Assembly: GCA_002269645.1 (NCBI GenBank)
Contig: NIVC01000301.1
Span: 542,460 to 606,459 of the forward strand
Length of the DNA: 64,000 nucleotides
Reading direction: 5' to 3'
Source of the DNA: Macrostomum lignano
Lineage: Eukaryota
A program made the position numbers and the translations under genes. The notes under the pieces were generated by a model. It saw nothing but the letters and a program-made list of their open reading frames with translations. It made no database searches and was not told where the DNA came from. Within the stretch, counting starts at the first letter, position 1. The number at the start of each line of letters is the position of its first letter. Below, piece by piece: positions 4,976 to 59,445 of this stretch.

Positions 4976-6045
4976 AACCCCTTCAGTTTTAGTGAAGTCG
5001 CATGTATCGCTCAGCACAAGTGAATGCATTAAGCGTCTGCTCTGCTTATTTCGCAATAACTCTCAGATATTTTTATTCCCAAATTTTGAGTTTTTTCCTC
5101 ATTCAACCCTGCTTTCCCTCCGATCTCTTATCAGAAAGTAATTTAATAAATAAATAAAACAGCTTGCATTGCTACTCGCCCTGTTGCTACTACTAGTCAG
5201 TAGTCTGCTGGGGTGGCCTTGTTTTACTCTGGCGCAATGTCATGCCGAGCTCTCATCTTGTCTTTTTTTCACACCGAAACTGCACGTTTATCTCTTTTTT
5301 TATTTTTTAAAGTCTGCTTTTCCTGCTTTTGCTAAGTTTTGTTAATATCAGCTGATCCAAGTCAGTTTTTTTCTATAATTCAAACTGTTTTTTTGTCACC
5401 CTGATGCAATGCTGATGCATTTAACTTGTGCACTGGTTCGTGTTCATTGCCTCACTGATTCGCAATCGGCATCCCCTCAGTTCCCCTTTTGCTGTTGTCC
5501 CCCAGTTTTGCTTCCAGACCCAGCTTGCTTCATCTTAATCTGTTGTTGTCTGACGTTTCCTGGAACTGAAATTGGCTAACTTTTTCTATGAAACAGTGTA
5601 AATTTGTTATAACTATGCTTATGAATTCTTATTAGGAATTTATTGCTACATGCTCACCGGGCTGACAGGTGAAAAAAGATATTTTTAGCTCCCAGTTGCT
5701 GCCCCGTTGCCCCCCAGCTCTGAGTTGCTAATAATTCAATATTCTATAATTACTGATATGATTGCCTGTACTGTGCATGAGTTGTGTAACTAATGCCATT
5801 AGACTGGGAATCTGTGCGGCATTATCTACTATTCTAGTCTGTGGCTTATTCTTATTATAATTATATATTATTAACGTTATATTAATTCTCCCGCTCCGCA
5901 TTCGTTAAATGTTTTGCTGTCTTCTCGCCTCTGTTGCTGTCAGTCAGGACTCTGACTGGTCTGGGCTTGCCCGCTTACTAGGGGGGATAGTAGGGTGAGT
6001 AGGGTAATTAAGGGTGAGACAGTTTGAGGGTGAAATGTGAAAAGG

Positions 6046-7234
6046 GGAGACAGGGAAGGTGAGACATTGGATAGGGGAGACATGGAGGGTAAGACATTGG
6101 ATAGGGGAGACATGGAGGGTAAGACATTGGATAGGGGAGACAGGGAGGGTAAGACATTGGATAGGGGAGACAGGGAGGGTGAGACATTGGATAGGGGAGA
6201 CATGGAGGGTAAGACATTGGATAGGGGAGACATGGAGGGTAAGACATTGGATAGGGAAGACATGGAGGGTAAGACATTGGATAGGGGAGACAGGGAGGGT
6301 GAGACATTGGATAGGGGAGACAGGGAGGGTGAGACATTGGATAGGGGAGACAGGGAGGGTGAGACATTGGATAGGGGAGACAGGGAGGGTGAGACATTGG
6401 ATAGGGGAGACATGGAGGGTAAGACATTGGATAGGGGAGACAGGGAGGGTGAGACATTGGATAGGGGAGACATGGAGGGTAAGACATTGGATAGGGGAGA
6501 CAGGGAGGGTGAGACATTGGATAGGGGAGACAGGAAGGGTGAGACATTGGATAGGGGAGACAGGGAGGGTGAGACATTGGATAGGGGAGACAGGGAGGGT
6601 GAGACATTGGATAGGGGAGACATGGAGGGTAAGACATTGGATAGGGGAGACAGGGAGGGTGAGACATTGGATAGGGGAGACAGGAAGGGTGAGACATTGG
6701 ATAGGGGAGACAGGGAGGGTGAGACATTGGATAGGGGAGACAGGGAGGGTGAGACATTGGATAGGGGAGACAGAGAGGGTGAGACATTGGATAGGGGAGA
6801 CAGGGAGGGTGAGACATTGGATAGGGGAGACAGGGAGGGTGAGACATTGGATAGGGGAGACAGAGAGGGTGAGACATTGGATAGGGGAGACAGGGAGGGT
6901 GAGACATTGGATAGGGGAGACAGGGAGGGTGAGACATTGGATAGGGGAGACAGGGAGGGTGAGACATTGGATAGGGGAGACAGGGAGGGTGAGACATTGG
7001 ATAGGGGAGACAGGGAGGGTGAGACATTGGATAGGGGAGACAGGGAGGGTGAGACATTGAATAGGGGAGACAGGGAGGGTGAGACATTGGATAGGGGAGA
7101 CAGGGAGGGTGAGACATTGGATAGGGGAGACAGGGAGGGTGAGACATTGGATAGGGGAGACAGGGAGGGTGAGACATTGGATAGGGGAGACAGGGAGGGT
7201 GAGACATTGGATAGGGGAGACAGGGAGGGTGAGA
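6046..7234. repeat. Highly homogeneous 30-bp purine/G-rich minisatellite (gagacattggataggggagacagggagggt), ~39 copies
   Basis: Units stay in register with the 60-nt lines; accounts for the repetitive ORFs at 5940-7275. Confidence 0.97.
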
Positions 7235-7955: not shown

Positions 7956-8539
7956 TCCGTCCCAGAGAACCAGTTTTGGGATGTCAGAGACTTCAAGAGA
8001 CCGGGGCACATATCCATATATTTCAATATCCAGAAAATTCAGAACCGGCCTCACCTCAAATGCAAAAAGAACGAAAGCAAATTTTTAATTGAGCCATTGG
8101 CAAACTCACTCGTTAACTAACTTTGTTTATTCATATCGCACGCATACCTGAAGGGGGTGGACTGAGCATAAGGATTTTGACACCTCGTGCATACAAAAAA
8201 TAGACTAATTTGGTGAGCTTGTTGGTAAGTTGTTTGACTCTGTTGAGTCTCAATCCACAACTCTCACGTGCTGCTCCTTGTGATATGGTTAAAAGTTGTT
8301 TAATAAACCAGAAATGAAAACGCACATTTTTGGATTAAAGATTTCGCCAAAAATATCGATATTAAAGCCTATGAGCTGCACGATTTATGAGTTGGAAAGC
8401 GTTTGAAAAAATATAGTCAAATTTATTATTATGAAATAGCATATAAACGATACACTGATTTGGCTAAGCATAAAGTCTGAGAAGTTTTCTGCGACTGCGA
8501 TCATTTAGGTCCTAAGGCTGCTGTGACATGTCCATGCCT

Positions 8540-8801
8540 GACCCAATCTGACCTAAAACAAATCTGAATCATGCTTGACCCAAATCAAGTCTAAGCTTGA
8601 CCCAAATCTGAATCATGCTTGACCCAAATCTAGTCTAGGCCTGACCCAAATCTAGTCTAGGCTTGACCCAAATCTAGTCTAGGCTTAACCCAAATCTGAA
8701 CCATGCTTGACCCAAATCTAGTCTAGGCTTGACCCAAATCTGAACCATGCTTGACCCAAATCTGAATCATGCTTGACCCAAATCTAGTCTAGGCTTGACC
8801 C
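8540..8801. repeat. Minisatellite, 21-22 bp, two variants (gacccaaatctagtctaggctt / gacccaaatctgaatcatgctt), ~12 copies
   Basis: Tandem units read directly. Confidence 0.9.
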
Positions 8802-8879
8802 CAAACAATGAGCTTCCCCTATAGAAGCCAGACAGCCAGAACGCATTCGCAGTTGGTTGCTCAGGAAGCCAGGCCCAGC

Positions 8880-9911
8880 TCAGTAGTCGGGGGTTCGCCA
8901 CACCAGAATGGCGAACCGGTTCACGAAGAAGTGGAACATGCAGCCGATCTCGTGTGTGCAGTAGGAGCCGTACTGGAATCGGCCGACGATGACGTGCCAG
9001 GCCCGCTGGTCGAGGCTGTCCAGCTCCGACTTGATGTACTTGGCGACGTCCTTCTCCACGGAAAACTCGTCCTGGGCCTTCCTGGCCAGCCGGACGATCA
9101 GCCGCTGCAGGTCCTCGGGCATCTCCTTGTCCAGCGCGATGATCCGCACGCCGTCCATGTCGTCCCGGTCGTCGTCAGCGCCAGCCGCGCCCGCTTGGAC
9201 TCGCTGCTCCGTGACTTTTTCGCTGCAAGTTAGGTGGCATTGTACTCGTGTCGAATTCGACTTTAAGCATTCTCAGCCTACCAGAAAGGCCAACATGGTT
9301 AAAAGTACTGATAGCTCTGTTGCTCACATGTAATCTTCGTTGGGCTTCAGGCCGAGCACCTCGCAGTACTCCTCGATAGAAATGGTGCCTGAGTTGTCAA
9401 TGTCGAACAGGTTCAGCCATTTCTGCGGACGGGTTGGCGGCTTTGTGTACTAAACTGGGGATCACGTGACAGCTAGGTCAGAAACAGGAGATCCGAATAG
9501 CATGGATTCGAGGAAGCTGCAAAGGGTTGCTTAAATTGCTTGCTTCTCTAATCAGTGGATCCCCAGATAGCCAATGGATTGCTAATCTAGCTAGTGGATT
9601 GCTAATCTAGCTAGGGGATTGCTAATCTAGCCAGTGGATTTCTAATCTATCCAATGGATTACTAATCTATCCAATCTATTGCTAATCTAGCTAGTGGATT
9701 GCTAATCTAGCCAATGGATTGCCGAATCAGAGGCCAAAATTGCGACGTTGCTAAGGCACACTCGGCTCTTAGCAACGGGCCACTCCGGCGTCACCTGCAC
9801 GAAGTTCATGTCCAGCCCATTCTCCCGGCAGTAGTCCAGCAGCTCGTCCTTCGTGATGGCACCGCTGTGGTCCGTGTCGATGCACTCGAAGGCGCTGAGT
9901 AGGTCGCACAT
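8880..9911 (-). CDS. EF-hand + dynein-light-chain-like protein (tegumental-allergen-like, TAL type), 184 aa; exons 9911-9795, 9422-9328, 9222-8880
   Basis: Exon 1b MCDLLSAFECIDTDHSGAITKDELLDYCRENGLDMNFVQ|gtgacg (phase 0). Exon 2 KWLNLFDIDNSGTISIEEYCEVLGLKPNEDY|gtgagc (phase 2). Exon 3 linker plus DLC domain (EKDVAKYIKSELD...WHVIVGR...GSYCTHE...FAILVWRTP). All junctions are GT-AG and in frame. Confidence 0.88.
9575..9720. repeat. Minisatellite, ~20 bp (ggattgctaatctagctagt), ~7 copies, in the TAL intron
   Basis: Tandem units read directly. Confidence 0.85.
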
Positions 9912-10424
9912 GACTCTGATTTGGTGCCACCAGAAGGGGCGGCCGCCCTTGGCTAAGTGACAGGTTTAGCCTGGCTAAATGCAGTCCGTGTTTACTGCTG
10001 GCCTGCACTGGACTTGGCCCGGCTCTGCACGCCTCGTGAGCCACTCACTCGCTCTGCAGCCAAAGCTGCATGAAGGCCCCGCAAGACAAGAAGAAATGGC
10101 AAATGTTCCGGTTGGGGTGGCTGCCCGCTTTCAACACACACCTATCCTCCAGCACATCTGCCCACTCAATGGACCCCCATAGGGAGAGAGGAGTACGTCT
10201 GGGAAGACCAGCAAGGGGTCACGTGAGGTTAATGTACATTAGTAGGAGGCGCGAGCGTACACTGCGGGGAGATGCTACTTTTTCTCCCCAGCGTTCCCGT
10301 TCCCATACAGCCATGACATGCCAGACAATAGCATTTCTGTTCGGCTGTAATTTTGCCAAGGAGCGTCTTTTTCGGGCATTTGATACTGAAGGCCGAGTTA
10401 AAGGTATTAAAAGGTAGAAATCGG

Positions 10425-10790
10425 ACACAAGTGACAGAAAGATGGGAGTCCAAGAAAGTGTCTGTTGGGAGTGACAGAAAGTGTCAGATGGGAGTGACAG
10501 AAAGTGTCAGATGGGAGTGACAGAAAGTGTCTGTTGGGAGTGACAGAAAGTGTCAGATGGGAGTGACAGAAAGATGGGAGTCCAAGAAAGTGTCTGTTGG
10601 GAGTGACAGAAAGTGTCAGATGGGAGTGACAGAAAGTGTCAGATGGGAGTGACAGAAAGTGTCTGTTGGGAGTGACAGAAAGTGTCAGATGGGAGTGACA
10701 GAGAGTGTCAGATGGGAGGGACAGAAAGTCAAACGGAGTGACAGAAAGAGCCAGATGGGAGTGACAGAAAGTGTCAGTTAGGAGTGACAG
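10425..10790. repeat. Minisatellite, ~23 bp (gggagtgacagaaagtgtcagat), ~15 copies
   Basis: Tandem units read directly. Confidence 0.9.
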
Positions 10791-10836
10791 ACAGTGCCAA
10801 CAAAATGCTAGCTACAGAAATGTCAGTCTCGCACAC

Positions 10837-10953
10837 CTGAGTGAACTTTTCGTCAAAGTTCTGCCGCTTGCAGTAGGCCTCGAGCTCCTCGCGGGTGATC
10901 TCGCCGCTAAAGTCGGTGTCGATGGACTCGAATGCTTTGAGAAAGTCGGCCAT
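10837..10953 (-). CDS. Second (upstream) EF-hand first exon of the TAL gene: MADFLKAFESIDTDFSGEITREELEAYCKRQNFDEKFTQ
   Basis: 117 nt like exon 9911-9795; own ATG, canonical EF loop DTDFSGEITREE, ends CAG|gtgtgc (phase 0), compatible with the acceptor at 9422; CCAAT and TATAAT-like motifs ~90-105 nt upstream. Confidence 0.78.
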
Positions 10954-11573
10954 GGCTGAGAGTCAGGGGGGCGAGCTGGTCTTGCTGAGGTCTTGCAAAA
11001 AGGCGAAGAGCAACGCAGCTTTGAGAGACTGGAAACGTGGAATTATAGAGAGAGAATTGGAGCCTCAAGGCGGGGCGTGGGCAGAGACTGACCCCCCCCC
11101 CCCCCTGACTGAGCGAGCGGCACAATGGGAGTTGCAAATTGCAAGAGTGAAGCTCGGCAGTTTGGACAATCGCCAGCAGCACAGGTCTCTGCGTGTCTGA
11201 GCAAACAGGAGTCGCTGCCGAGTTGCCACTTGGCCGAGAGAGAGCAAACTCAGTGAGTGAGCAGTGAGTGAGTGAGATGGGGCCGGCGACTGCAAGGCAG
11301 ACCACAGTGGTATGAAGTTGCAACAGCTCTGCTGCACCTGGCCACAATTTGAATGGAAAATACCATGCCATAAAAGACGAGAGAAGTTTTTAGAAAGACA
11401 GAGAAGAGCCCGCGTGCTTGTTTGAAAAACAAAAAGCAATTCGGGTGAGGGGGGGGGTTTGACTGGGTTTCTTAAATTTTGTCTTTTTTGAGAATTTTGC
11501 TGAGCCACACAGGGCGCGCCGAGACAGCGCGGCGACCACAGGTGGGTGGGGAGGGAGATGGGAGAAGCAGAAT

Positions 11574-12137
11574 CTGCTGGTCAGTAGGCACACTGCAAAT
11601 GTATAGTAAAACACCAATACTACTGCTGGTCAGTAGGCGCACTGCAAATGTATAGTAAAACACCAATACTACTGCTGGTCAGTAGGCACACTGCAAATGT
11701 ATAGTAAAACACCAATACTACTGCTGGTCAGTAGGCACACTGCAAATGCATAGTAAAACACCAATACTACTGCTGGTCAGTAGGCACACTGCAAATGTAT
11801 AGTAAAACACCAATACTACTGCTGGTCAGTAGGCGCACTGCAAATGTATAGTAAAACACCAATACTACTGCTGGTCAGTAGGCACACTGCAAATGTATAG
11901 TAAAACACCAATACTACTGCTGGTCAGTAGGCACACTGCAAATGCATAGTAAAACACCAATACTACTGCTGGTCAGTAGGCACACTGCAAATGTATAGTA
12001 AAACACCAATACTACTGCTGGTCAGTAGGCGCACTGCAAATGTATAGTAAAACACCAATACTACTGCTGGTCAGTAGGCACACTGCAAATGTATAGTAAA
12101 ACACCAATACTACTGCTGGTCAGTAGGCGCTGCAAAT
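11574..12137. repeat. Minisatellite, 49-bp unit (ctgctggtcagtaggcacactgcaaatgtatagtaaaacaccaatacta), ~11 copies
   Basis: Near-identical head-to-tail units with no spacers. Confidence 0.95.
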
Positions 12138-13727: not shown

Positions 13728-14850
13728 TGGTCTCCCGTATCCAAGGAAACAAACGGTTGTTATGTGGCTACAACTGCCGAGGTCTCCCGTATCCAGGAAA
13801 CAAACGGTTGCTATGTGGCTACAACTGCCGAGGTCTCCCGTATCCAAGGAAACAAACGGTTGCTATGTGGCTACAACTGCCGAGGTCTCCCGTATCCAGG
13901 AAACAACCGGTTGCTATGTGGCTACAACTGCCGAGGTCTCCCGTATCCAGGAAACAAACGGTTGTTATGTGGCTACAACTGCCGAGGTCTCCCGTATCCA
14001 GGAAACAAACGGTTGCTATGTGGCTACAACTGCCGAGGTCTCCCGTATCCAAGGAAACAAACGGTTGCTATGTGGCTACAACTGCCGAGGTCTCCCGTAT
14101 CCAGGAAACAACCGGTTGCTATGTGGCTACAACTGCCGAGGTCTCCCGTATCCAAGGAAACAACCGGTTGCTATTTGGCTACAACTGCCGAGGTCTCCCG
14201 TATCCAAAGTAACAACCGGTTGCTATGTGACTACAACTGCCGAGGTCTCCCGTATCCAAGGACACAACCGGTCGCTATGTAACGACAACTGCCGAGGTCT
14301 ATCGTATCCAAGGAAACAACCGGTTGCTATGTGGCTACAACTGCCGAGGTCTCCCGTATCCAAGGAAACAACCGGTTGCTATGTGGCTACAACTGCCGAG
14401 GTCTCCCGTATCCAAAGTAACAACCGGTTGCTATGTGGCTACAACTGCCGAGGTCTCCCGTATCCAAGGAAACAACCGGTTGCTATGTGGCTACAACTGC
14501 CAAGGTCTCCCGTATCCAAGGACACAACCGGTCGCTATGTGGCTACAACTGCCGAGGCCTACCGTATCCAAGGAAACAACCGGTTGCTATGTGGCTACAA
14601 CTGCCGAGGTCTCCCGTATCCAAGGAAACAACCGGTTGCTATGTGGCTACAACTGCCGAGGTCTCCCGCATCCAAAGTAACAACCGGTTGCTATGTGGCT
14701 ACAACTGCCCAGGTCTCCCGTATCCGAGGAAACAACCGGTTGCTACGTGGCTACAACTGCCGAGGTCTCCCGTATCTGAGGAAACAACCGGTTGCTATGT
14801 GACTACAACTGCCGAGGTCTCCCGTATCCAAAGTAACAACCGGTTGCTAT
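13728..14850. repeat. Minisatellite, 50-51 bp (ggtctcccgtatccaaggaaacaaccggttgctatgtggctacaactgccga), ~22 copies, abutting the stop of the TSP1 gene
   Basis: Tandem units read directly. Confidence 0.95.
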
Positions 14851-14859
14851 GCAGTTCTA

Positions 14860-35244: not shown

Positions 35245-36601
35245 TTTGAGAACTGCACAATCTCACTAGAAATCTCTTTGAAAACTACAAAAACCCACTA
35301 GAAATCTCTATGAGAACTGCACAATCTCACTAGAAATCTTAATGAGAACTGCACAATCTCACTAGAAATCTCTTTGAAAACTACACAATCTCACTAGAAA
35401 TCTCTATGAGAACTACACAATCTCATTGGAAAATCTCTATGAGAACTACACAATCTCACTAGAAATCTCTATGAGAACTACTGCACAATCTCACTAGAAA
35501 TCTCTTTGAAAACTACACAATCTCACTAGAGATCTCTATGAGAACTACACAATCTCACTAGAAATCTCTTTGAAAACTACACAATCTCACTAGAAATCTC
35601 TATGAGAACTACACAATCTCATTGGAAAATCTCTATGAGAACTACACAATCTCACTAGAAATCTCTATGAGAACTACTGCACAATCTCACTAGAAATCTT
35701 AATGAGAACTGCACAATCTCACTAGAAATCTCTATGAGAACTGCACAATCTCACTAGAAATCTCTTTGAAAACTACACAATCTCACTAGAAATCTCTATG
35801 ATAACTACTGCACAATCTCACTAGAAATCTTAATGAGAACTGCACAATCTCACTAGAAATCTTAATGAGAACTGCACAATCTCACTAGAAATCTTAATGA
35901 GAACTGCACAATCTCACTAGAAATCTCTTTGAAAACTACACAATCTCACTAGAAATCTCTATGAGAACTGCACAATCTCAGTAGAAATCTCTTTGAAAAC
36001 TACACAATCTCACTAGAGATCTCTATGAGAACTACACAATCTCACTAGAAATCTCTTTGAAAACTACACAATCTCACTAGAGATCTCTATGAGAACTACA
36101 CAATCTCACTAGAAATCTCTATGAGAACTGCACAATCTCACTAGAAATCTTAATGAGAACTGCACAATCTCACTAGAAATCTTAATGAGAACTGCACAAT
36201 CTCACTAGAAATCTCTATGAGAGCTACACAATCTCACTAGAAATCTCTATGAGAACTGCACAATCTCACTAGAAATCTCTATGAGAACTGCACAATCTCA
36301 GTAGAAATCTCTATGAGAGCTACACAATCTCACTAGAAATCTCTATGAGAACTACACAATCTCACTAGAAAATCTCTATGAGAGCTACACAATCTCACTA
36401 GAAATCTCTATGAGAACTGCACAATCTCACTAGAAATCTCTATGAGAATCACACAATCTCACTAGAAATCTCTATGAGAACTACACAATCTCACTAGAAA
36501 TCTCTATGAGAACTACACAATCTCACTAGAAAATCTCTATGAGAACTACACAATCTCACTAGAAATCTCTATGAGAACCACACAATCTCACTAGAAATCT
36601 C
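35245..36601. repeat. Minisatellite, 30-33 bp (gagaactacacaatctcactagaaatctctat), ~44 copies
   Basis: Tandem units with variant blocks. Confidence 0.95.
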
Positions 36602-36740
36602 TGGTCGCAAATCCGAGTGCGCGAGAGATTCCAGCTTACAACCCAGCGCTGCGCCTGATTGGATCTTAGGCTATTCAGCCATTTCAGCCACCCCTCCAGC
36701 AAGTCGCAGTCAGAGTGGCCCAGAGATATGCGTCGCTCTT

Positions 36741-57942: not shown

Positions 57943-59445
57943 GTGGATCAAGGTCTCAATGCACATTGCCTCGACCCGGATCATCTGCAATGCACACTGC
58001 CTCAACCCGGATCATCTGCAATGCACACTGCCCCAACCCGGATCATCTGCAATACACACTGCCCCAACCCCAATCACCTGCAATACACACTGCCCCAACC
58101 CGGATCATCTGCAATGCACACTGCCTCAACCCGGATCATCTGCAATGCACACTGCCCCAACCCGGATCATCTGCAATGCACACTGCCCCAACCCGGATCA
58201 TCTGCAATGCACACTGCCCCAACCCGGATCATCTGCAATGCACACTGCCCCAACCCGGATCATCTGCAATGCACACTGCCCCAACCCGGATCATCTGCAA
58301 TGCACACTGCCCCAACCCGAATCATCTGCAGTGCACACTGCCCCAACCCGGATCATCTGCAATGCACACTGCCCCAACCCGGATCATCTGCAATGCACAC
58401 TGCCCCAACCCGGATCATCTGCAATGTACACTGCCCCAACCCGAATCATCTGCAGTGCACACTGCCCCAACCCGGATCATCTGCAATGCACACTGCCCCA
58501 ACCCGGATCATCTGCAATGTACACTGCCCCAACCCGGATCATCTGCAATGTACACTGCCCCAACCCGGATCATCTGCAATGCACACTGCCCCAACCCGGA
58601 TCATCTGCAATGCACACTGCCCCAACCCGGATCATCTGCAATGCACACTGCCCCAACCCGGATCATCTGCAATGCACACTGCCCCAACCCGAATCATCTG
58701 CAGTGCACACTGCCCCAACCCGGATCATCTGCAATGCACACTGCCCCAACCCGGATCATCTGCAATGCACACTGCCCCAACCCGGATCATCTGCAATGTA
58801 CACTGCCCCAACCCGAATCATCTGCAGTGCACACTGCCCCAACCCGGATCATCTGCAATACACACTGCCCCAACCCGGATCATCTGCAATGCACACTGCC
58901 CCAACCCCAATCACCTGCAATGCACACTGCCCCAACCCGGATCATCTGCAATGCACACTGCCCCAACCCGGATCATCTGCAATGTACACTGCCCCAACCC
59001 GGATCATCTGCAATGCACACTGCCCCAACCCGGATCATCTGCAATGTACACTGCCCCAACCCGGATCATCTGCATTGTACACTGCCCCAACCCGGATCAT
59101 CTGCAATGCACACTGCCTCAACCCGGATCATCTGCAATGCACACTGCCCCAACCCGGATCATCTGCAATGCACACTGCCCCAACCCGGATCATCTGCAAT
59201 GCACACTGCCTCAACCCGGATCATCTGCAATGCACACTGCCCCAACCCGGATCATCTGCAATGCACACTGCCCCAACCCGGATCATCTGCAATGTACACT
59301 GCCCCAACCCGGATCATCTGCATTGTACACTGCCCCAACCCGGATCATCTGCAATGCACACTGCCTCAACCCGGATCATCTGCAGTGCACACTGCCCCAA
59401 CCCGAATCATCTGCAGTGCACACTGCCCCAACCCGAATCATCTAG
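57943..59445. repeat. Minisatellite, 31 bp (cccaacccggatcatctgcaatgcacactgc), ~48 copies, between the two caveolins
   Basis: Tandem units; accounts for three ~500-aa spurious ORFs. Confidence 0.97.

Follow-up and report, generated by a model that had tools for sequence, protein, structure and literature searches.

Macrostomum lignano, a free-living flatworm, has a TAL-type gene in which two N-terminal EF-hands precede a dynein-light-chain (DLC) domain, and whose first intron contains a second version of the first coding exon that is likely to be an alternative first exon. The gene is on the minus strand of contig NIVC01000301.1, within a stretch of 64,000 nucleotides (nt) that we refer to as the window; adding 542459 to a window coordinate gives the position on the contig. 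The annotated exon 1a and the unannotated exon 1b each encode an EF-hand 1, and either could be joined to the same exons 2 and 3, giving two proteins that we call isoA and isoB. The mechanism is a known one; it would be new in a TAL-type EF-hand/DLC gene. From its sequence, we think it rather probable that exon 1b is currently used as a first exon, and isoB, the second isoform that would result, is a well-supported prediction.

Two first exons and one downstream set

The original prediction, made from the letters of the window, described two paralogous ATG-initiated exons of 117 nt with canonical EF loops and phase-0 CAG/GT donors, followed by a single set of downstream exons. When the minus strand of window positions 8500-11500 was read and translated, this exon anatomy was found to be exact to the base, and so were the sequence and translation of both first exons (Table 1). 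Exons 1a and 1b have the same length and phase and align without gaps, with 54% identity in amino acids and 64% in nucleotides. The similarity is detected by tblastn within the window (E ~5e-9 to 1e-8), and the local nucleotide score of the pair is 37, compared to 8.0 +/- 1.4 for shuffled sequences in this ungapped-like comparison; it is non-random and far above chance. It ends at the exon borders: the scores of the 300-nt flanks on the upstream and downstream sides, 12 and 9, are those expected from shuffled sequences.

The 64-kb window contains one exon for EF-hand 2, one exon for the DLC domain and no further EF-hand exon, in agreement with the proposed single set, and tblastn within the window detected neither a second set of exons 2 and 3 nor a relic of one between 1a and 1b. 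Exon 1b is 372 nt from exon 2, with matching phase. By translation, the two splice combinations, 1a+2+3 (isoA) and 1b+2+3 (isoB), each give the 184 amino acids that had been announced, with an EF-hand pair and a Dynein_light domain.

IsoA is 100% identical to GenBank PAA85927.1 ('hypothetical protein BOX15_Mlig001654g1'); the annotated range of that gene on NIVC01000301.1 is exactly window 8880-10953, with identical DNA. GenBank's annotation of this assembly has transcriptome assemblies, both RNA-seq-guided and de novo, as its sole source, with open reading frames (ORFs) from TransDecoder (PMC5730564). Since PAA85927.1 derives from RNA data only, the 10837->9422 junction is backed by transcripts: exon 1a, which lies behind a TATA-type promoter, encodes an EF-hand 1 of family-typical sequence and is part of the annotated coding sequence (CDS), is spliced from 10837 to 9422 to give the annotated 184-residue protein. 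The TATAATT upstream of it is the probable core promoter of this isoform. The original prediction had left room for the case where no transcript uses the 10837 donor. The RNA-derived annotation removes this doubt, which was aimed at the wrong exon: 1a is canonical, family-typical and annotated, and it is 1b that is divergent and unverified.

The paralogs lead to the same assignment. The annotated M. lignano paralogs (Mlig008799/016025, Mlig001380, Mlig026868 and Mlig005207) all begin with a 1a-type exon, MADFL[K/T]AFE[S/A]IDTDFSGEIT..., that is 68-90% identical to exon 1a in amino acids, has the same length and ends in phase 0, the most distant paralog being one codon shorter. Two of the paralogous loci, L003 and L006, have a TATAAA at a similar distance from their ATG. 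Because the paralogs start with a 1a-type exon and 1a has a TATA-type element like those of L003 and L006, 1a is the canonical exon and 1b the odd one. Regarding L003 and L006 themselves (Mlig008799 and Mlig016025), they are near-identical copies whose first introns measure 2.2 kb and 0.36 kb, and one of their annotated products (P0004) has an aberrant C-terminus in place of the end of the DLC domain, a difference that suggests a mis-spliced or degenerating copy.

The order 1a-1b-exon 2-exon 3 is found on three contigs: NIVC01000301.1, NIVC01001427.1 (L001, Mlig009106g1) and NIVC01004077.1 (L002, Mlig001654g3). Exon 1b is present and identical on L001 and L002. One copy differs by an 80-nt length change in an intronic minisatellite, and the contigs are therefore separate assemblies. 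The possibility of a misassembled or collapsed tandem duplicate, to which the original prediction had drawn attention, is ruled out by the common layout of these three contigs. The number of copies fits the redundant assembly of the DV1 line, with its additional large chromosomes.

Table 1. Features of the EF-hand/DLC gene in window coordinates (a slash marks the splice site)
Feature	Position	Strand	Description
exon 1a	10953-10837	-	first coding exon, 117 nt, phase 0; encodes MADFLKAFESIDTDFSGEITREELEAYCKRQNFDEKFTQ; donor CAG/GTGTGC
exon 1b	9911-9795	-	117 nt, phase 0, begins with ATG; encodes MCDLLSAFECIDTDHSGAITKDELLDYCRENGLDMNFVQ; donor CAG/GTGACG; unannotated
exon 2	9422-9328	-	EF-hand 2 (KWLNLFDIDNSGTISIEEYCEVLGLKPNEDY..); acceptor ...gtccgcag/AAATGG; donor AT/GTGAGC; phase 2; common to both possible isoforms
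exon 3	9222-8880	-	linker and dynein-light-chain-like domain; TGA stop at 8880-8882
intron 1a-1b	9912-10836	-	23-bp minisatellite (10430-10796) and ~520 nt of unique sequence
intron 1b-exon 2	9423-9794	-	20-bp minisatellite (9568-9722)
TATA-like TATAATT	11041-11047	-	94 nt upstream of ATG-1a

Coding constraint on exon 1b and content of the swap

The synonymous divergence among all exon-1 copies, including 1a and 1b, is saturated: the proportion of synonymous differences (pS) is 0.52-0.84, and the synonymous distance (dS) ranges from ~0.9 to beyond what can be estimated. Exon 1, which encodes EF-hand 1 and the inter-hand linker, would have been duplicated in tandem long ago. Despite this, exon 1b is free of indels and stops, and the ATG, the GT donor and a canonical EF loop are all preserved in it. 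When the 42 observed differences were placed randomly on a 1a-type ancestor, all these features were kept in 7.5e-5 of the trials; the fraction is 0.011 in the same neutral simulation if half of the differences are neutral. By inspection, no hydrophobic core position and no loop ligand has been lost. Among the residues that are invariant in the 1a-type paralogs, 17/21 are kept in 1b, compared to 6/16 variable positions that match any paralog (Fisher p=0.015).

The base composition of exon 1b was also considered. The GC fractions at the three codon positions are 0.56/0.31/0.92 in 1b and 0.61/0.32/0.88 in the rest of the CDS, and the introns have 45-54% GC. The GC content at third positions (GC3) thus amounts to 36/39 (92%), and the probability of obtaining at least 36/39 is <=7e-6 even with a background GC of 60%. 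The pairwise ratio of nonsynonymous to synonymous distances (dN/dS) is 0.28-0.48 for 1b; taken alone, this ratio is too saturated, and obtained from too short a sequence (39 codons), to discriminate between relaxed and neutral evolution, and the features above were used jointly. These statistics, which come from one genome, make 1b look like a coding exon maintained by selection, and they are compatible with a very recent silencing. Purifying selection would have preserved exon 1b in a translatable state, including an ATG and a donor of its own.

Regarding what the swap would change, Pfam finds separate EF-hand matches at residues 4-29 and 40-62, the latter (EF-hand_1) starting exactly at the exon 1/2 boundary. 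This boundary thus falls exactly between the two matches, which makes exon 1 a complete EF-hand-1 module with its linker. The EF1 loops of 1a (DTDFSGEITREE) and 1b (DTDHSGAITKDE) are identical at positions 1, 3, 5, 6, 8, 9 and 12. The liganding positions are therefore the same in both (D-x-D-x-S-G-x-I-T-x-x-E), and the swap is not an on/off Ca2+ switch. As a matter of fact, both versions of EF1, and EF2 as well, have canonical loops by inspection (D-x-D-x-S/N-G-x-I-x-x-x-E), and both EF1 versions should bind Ca2+. The 18/39 positions at which 1a and 1b differ comprise loop positions 4, 7, 10 and 11, surface residues of the exiting helix and residues of the EF1-EF2 linker (KRQNFDEK in 1a, RENGLDMN in 1b). 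Exon 1b encodes three cysteines (including Cys2) and two basic residues, compared to one and five, respectively, for 1a, and its net charge is more acidic. The proposal that the isoforms would differ only in the first Ca2+-binding hand is therefore right as far as it goes, except that all the ligands of that hand are the same and that the linker and the helix surface differ too. It is plausible that the swap alters the affinity or kinetics of Ca2+ binding, the binding of partners or the localisation of the protein, the ability to bind Ca2+ being common to both isoforms. The N-terminal Met-Cys of the 1b product could be lipid-modified.

Routes to exon 1b and competing explanations

The duplicated exon is a first exon that carries the start codon, which implies that a second transcription start is needed, and not mutually exclusive splicing. 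The simplest productive route would be a start in the ~520 nt of unique intron upstream of 1b. Transcription would begin inside the 1a-1b intron, 1b would become the first exon and be spliced from 9795 to 9422, and the product would be a second 184-residue isoform with the same Ca2+-liganding residues, isoA being the major form. ATG-1b is preceded by 160 nt that are free of ATG, with a purine at -3 and a GGGCGG box at 9948-9943. We tentatively propose a fuller version of this scenario, in which an internal promoter drives isoB, whose anciently duplicated and selectively maintained EF-hand-1 module has the same Ca2+ ligands in a different loop microenvironment, and in which isoB acts as a sensor in particular stages or tissues, its Ca2+ affinity, its choice of partners or its association with membranes being altered; this is quite possible, and we would not call it probable.

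Other ways to produce a 1b transcript were considered and rejected. In M. lignano, a 35-nt spliced leader (SL) is added to the transcripts of about 30-39% of the genes, at an acceptor [T/C]TNCAG. The AATCAG that precedes 1b fits this motif poorly, the terminal ATG of the leader would be out of frame, and the 1a donor is upstream in cis, so that an SL route would still need a separate internal start; trans-splicing was discarded as a substitute for the second promoter and kept as a possible variant of the 5' end. An alternative donor in the 5' untranslated region of 1a, by which 1a would be skipped, was discarded too, the sole GT there being GTTGCT (by eye).

The products of exon 1b were searched for in several collections. 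An exhaustive HMMER search with the query P0001 was run against 1.84e9 representatives, and the best 150 of 1,518 hits were scored against both exon peptides. Among these 150, the closest relatives of exon 1b are the 1a-type exons of M. lignano itself, with BLOSUM scores of 108-117, compared to <=102 for the others, which suggests that 1b arose within the clade and was not imported; a foreign source gene is unlikely, since nothing among these hits is closer. A degenerate pattern for the two splice junctions gave 0 hits to either in metagenome contigs; as neither junction was matched, that collection is uninformative about the isoforms.

Several observations weigh against a current use of exon 1b. 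A 1b-type N-terminus is absent from a word-indexed collection of 5.8e9 clusters and from the best 150 of the 1,518 HMMER hits, and the exact sequence of isoB is absent from a collection of 15 billion proteins. This absence is a weak negative, because isoA itself is recorded from NCBI/UniRef only, with no Logan-derived record, and RNA assemblies of M. lignano appear to be uncovered. The RNA-based GenBank annotation has the 1a form only, on all three copies; since the annotation was filtered, this is a weak negative too. A sensitive tblastn search of the paralogous loci L003-L007 found no 1b-type exon, and no TATA or recognisable core promoter was seen within ~500 nt upstream of 1b. The 1b donor, GTGAC, departs from the species consensus GT[G/A]AG, as does GTGTG, the 1a donor, which is demonstrably used. 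The dN between 1b and the 1a-type exons is 0.29-0.43, compared to 0.08-0.23 among the 1a-types; this faster nonsynonymous change indicates a relaxed or altered constraint, and if dS is split equally between the branches, a pairwise dN/dS of 0.48 is compatible with a rather relaxed 1b branch. Last, the three genomic copies are ~99-100% identical across exons and introns alike, and equal identity of exons and introns gives no independent test of conservation.

The content of the annotation, the absence of isoB from the protein collections and of an obvious promoter before 1b, the faster dN and the fact that the paralogs manage without 1b are also what is expected if 1b is a silent relic in intron 1, either a formerly used duplicate or the remaining first exon of a tandem copy of the gene whose exons 2 and 3 were lost. 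At a dS of at least ~0.9, however, a long-dead exon should have lost its ATG, its donor or its frame, and its GC3 should have drifted to 45-54%. On the contrary, 1b has a GC3 of 92%, an undamaged EF-hand core and no indel, which only a very recent silencing would fit. We therefore regard the relic as an unlikely explanation, albeit one to be taken seriously.

It may also be imagined that 1b is an internal cassette spliced after 1a. The original prediction had found no open in-frame acceptor in front of the second ATG; this has to be qualified, since an open frame of 54 nt precedes ATG-1b and includes a single in-frame AG at 9949-9948 (...cttagccaag/GGCGGC), 36 nt before the ATG, the use of which would give a protein of 235 amino acids with three EF-hands. 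Alternatively, a better CAG at 9918-9916, 4 nt before ATG-1b and out of frame, could be used: cis-splicing of 1a to this site would cause a frameshift and termination in exon 2, and 1b would be a 'poison exon' that lowers isoA. Both AGs exist, CAG is the preferred acceptor in this species, and the 1a donor is available upstream in cis. However, the in-frame AG would make a weak acceptor, being an AAG that lacks a pyrimidine tract in a species where CAG is enriched, and no protein with 1a and 1b together was found in the searched databases, which makes a three-EF-hand product unlikely; the statement that the exons do not chain holds in the sense that chaining is unlikely, yet the sequence does not bar it. 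Besides, EF-hands pair, and an odd number of them is structurally awkward, which we count against the cassette. The poison exon leaves the conserved ATG, the EF-hand residues and the in-frame GC3 bias unexplained. Both forms of the cassette are, in our opinion, improbable. Even more so is the idea that the duplication is an artefact made of collapsed or chimeric tandem copies, or that 1b is part of another transcription unit. In its favour, the assembly of M. lignano, a hidden polyploid, is redundant and repeat-rich, and minisatellites flank both exons; against it, three independent contigs have the same order of exons, one of them with its own minisatellite length, the window has no other exon 2/3 set, and 1b lies close to exon 2 in the matching phase. 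This last explanation is very improbable.

Genomic surroundings, family and significance

Other particularities of the copies and of the window deserve mention. Compared with window 8880-8890, L002 (10143-10170) has a 1-nt gap near the end of exon 3, and its protein, PAA48706.1 (190 amino acids), ends with ...RTPTTELGLAS and not with ...RTPDY; either the PacBio sequence has an indel error there, or the copy is genuinely frameshifted, as an allele or homeolog. Between 1a and the end of exon 2, L001 differs from the window by 1 mismatch in 1,531 intron and exon-1 bases and 1 in exon 2, whereas exon 3 has 6/343 mismatches and the 3' flank looks unrelated (116/457 mismatches; the region concerned is window 8380-9222). 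Such a mosaic points to gene conversion, or to a breakpoint of recombination inside the gene. A G15 homopolymer (11083-11097, minus strand) lies shortly before the TATA-like element, at ~130 nt from ATG-1a, and a run of C (~11447-11456) is found ~500 nt upstream of the same ATG; these could be error-prone sites of the assembly or promoter-proximal low-complexity elements. The window is full of long minisatellite arrays of high identity, with periods of 16-52 bp and <=53 copies (for example 1473-2689, 6043-7234, 11574-12128, 13729-14851, 35247-36602 and 57957-59443). Most ORFs of more than 200 amino acids in the mechanical list fall inside such arrays and are not genes.

The assignment of the gene to the TAL type, proposed in the original prediction, is borne out by the Pfam architecture and by matches to named proteins. 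The pair of EF-hands matches EF-hand_7 (E=8e-11 for isoA and 9e-13 for isoB), and residues 102-181 match PF01221, Dynein_light (E=2.9e-24). The structure 9voa_A ('CaBP4'), which we take to be FhCaBP4 of Fasciola, matches over residues 5-183 (E=3.5e-18), and 5x2e_A ('Tegumental protein 20.8 kDa') over the EF-hand pair (E=1.7e-13). Antigen Sm21.7 of Schistosoma (P0060) aligns end to end, with 33% identity over 4-183, and so does the Tegument antigen of Clonorchis/Opisthorchis (P0031). Sm21.7 (a SmTAL), the Clonorchis Tegument antigen/20.8 kDa protein and CaBP4 likewise have ~180 amino acids, two N-terminal EF-hands and a C-terminal DLC-like domain. Every feature of the flatworm EF-hand/DLC (TAL, CaBP) family that a sequence can reveal is present, and on these grounds the gene is a M. 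lignano member of this family. The named members come from parasites, unlike the present gene, which belongs to a free-living macrostomorph; the host-allergen side of the family name is thus inapplicable here.

Four uncharacterised proteins from Logan and JGI transcript-like contigs (P0036, P0041, P0068 and P0133) have a TAL-type N-terminal EF-hand pair, ~50% identical to the product of exons 1-2, which is fused to a complete ribosomal protein L6e (PF01159, E 1e-27 to 1e-31) and not to a DLC domain. They may represent a genuine lineage of EF-hand-eL6 fusions, or the contigs may be chimeric.

The TAL family has been described as a family of parasitic platyhelminths, with 13 separate genes in S. 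mansoni (Fitzsimmons et al. 2012, PMC3317908); the words 'splice', 'exon' and 'isoform' are absent from that article. In a limited and shallow check of the TAL-family literature, we found no description of an exon-level swap of EF-hand 1, and literature searches with gene identifiers and in supplements returned nothing relevant.

Comparable arrangements are known elsewhere. Tandem exon duplication is a well-described, genome-wide source of alternative, mutually exclusive exons; the present locus resembles these cases in the equal length and phase of the two exons, in the homology that is confined to the exon and in the single shared set of flanking exons, and differs from them in that a first exon with a start codon was duplicated. 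The vertebrate fast myosin alkali light chains MLC1f and MLC3f, which are EF-hand proteins, are made from two promoters, with alternative 5' coding exons and common 3' exons. Their alternative exons are not homologous duplicates and do not swap an EF-hand, whereas 1a and 1b are paralogs. The non-muscle and smooth-muscle isoforms of ACTN1 differ in their response to calcium. According to PMC4435478, alternative exons of ACTN1 replace part of the EF-hand region and leave the rest of the protein identical, so that the isoforms differ in an EF-hand motif, which is the likeness to the case described here. The ACTN1 exons are internal, mutually exclusive cassettes selected by splice-site competition, and one version is insensitive to Ca2+; in M. 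lignano, the exons are ATG-bearing first exons, both loops have all their ligands, and the choice would be made by the transcription start.

If exon 1b is silent, the gene is an ordinary one, apart from the unusually good preservation of the duplicated exon in intron 1. If it is used, isoB would be the first isoform of the EF-hand/DLC family known to arise from an exon swap, in a genetically tractable flatworm capable of transgenesis, and M. lignano would have diversified a TAL-type calcium sensor at the level of the exon and not of the gene. The expression of 1b would add an unannotated isoform to the gene set of M. lignano and indicate that the EF-hand/DLC family, which has been studied mainly as schistosome and liver-fluke antigens, diversifies in free-living flatworms too. 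It would also provide a natural matched pair of proteins that differ only in EF-hand 1, hence a clean test of the role of this module in Ca2+ affinity, dimerisation and partner binding; since M. lignano permits transgenesis and RNA interference, this test could be made in vivo.

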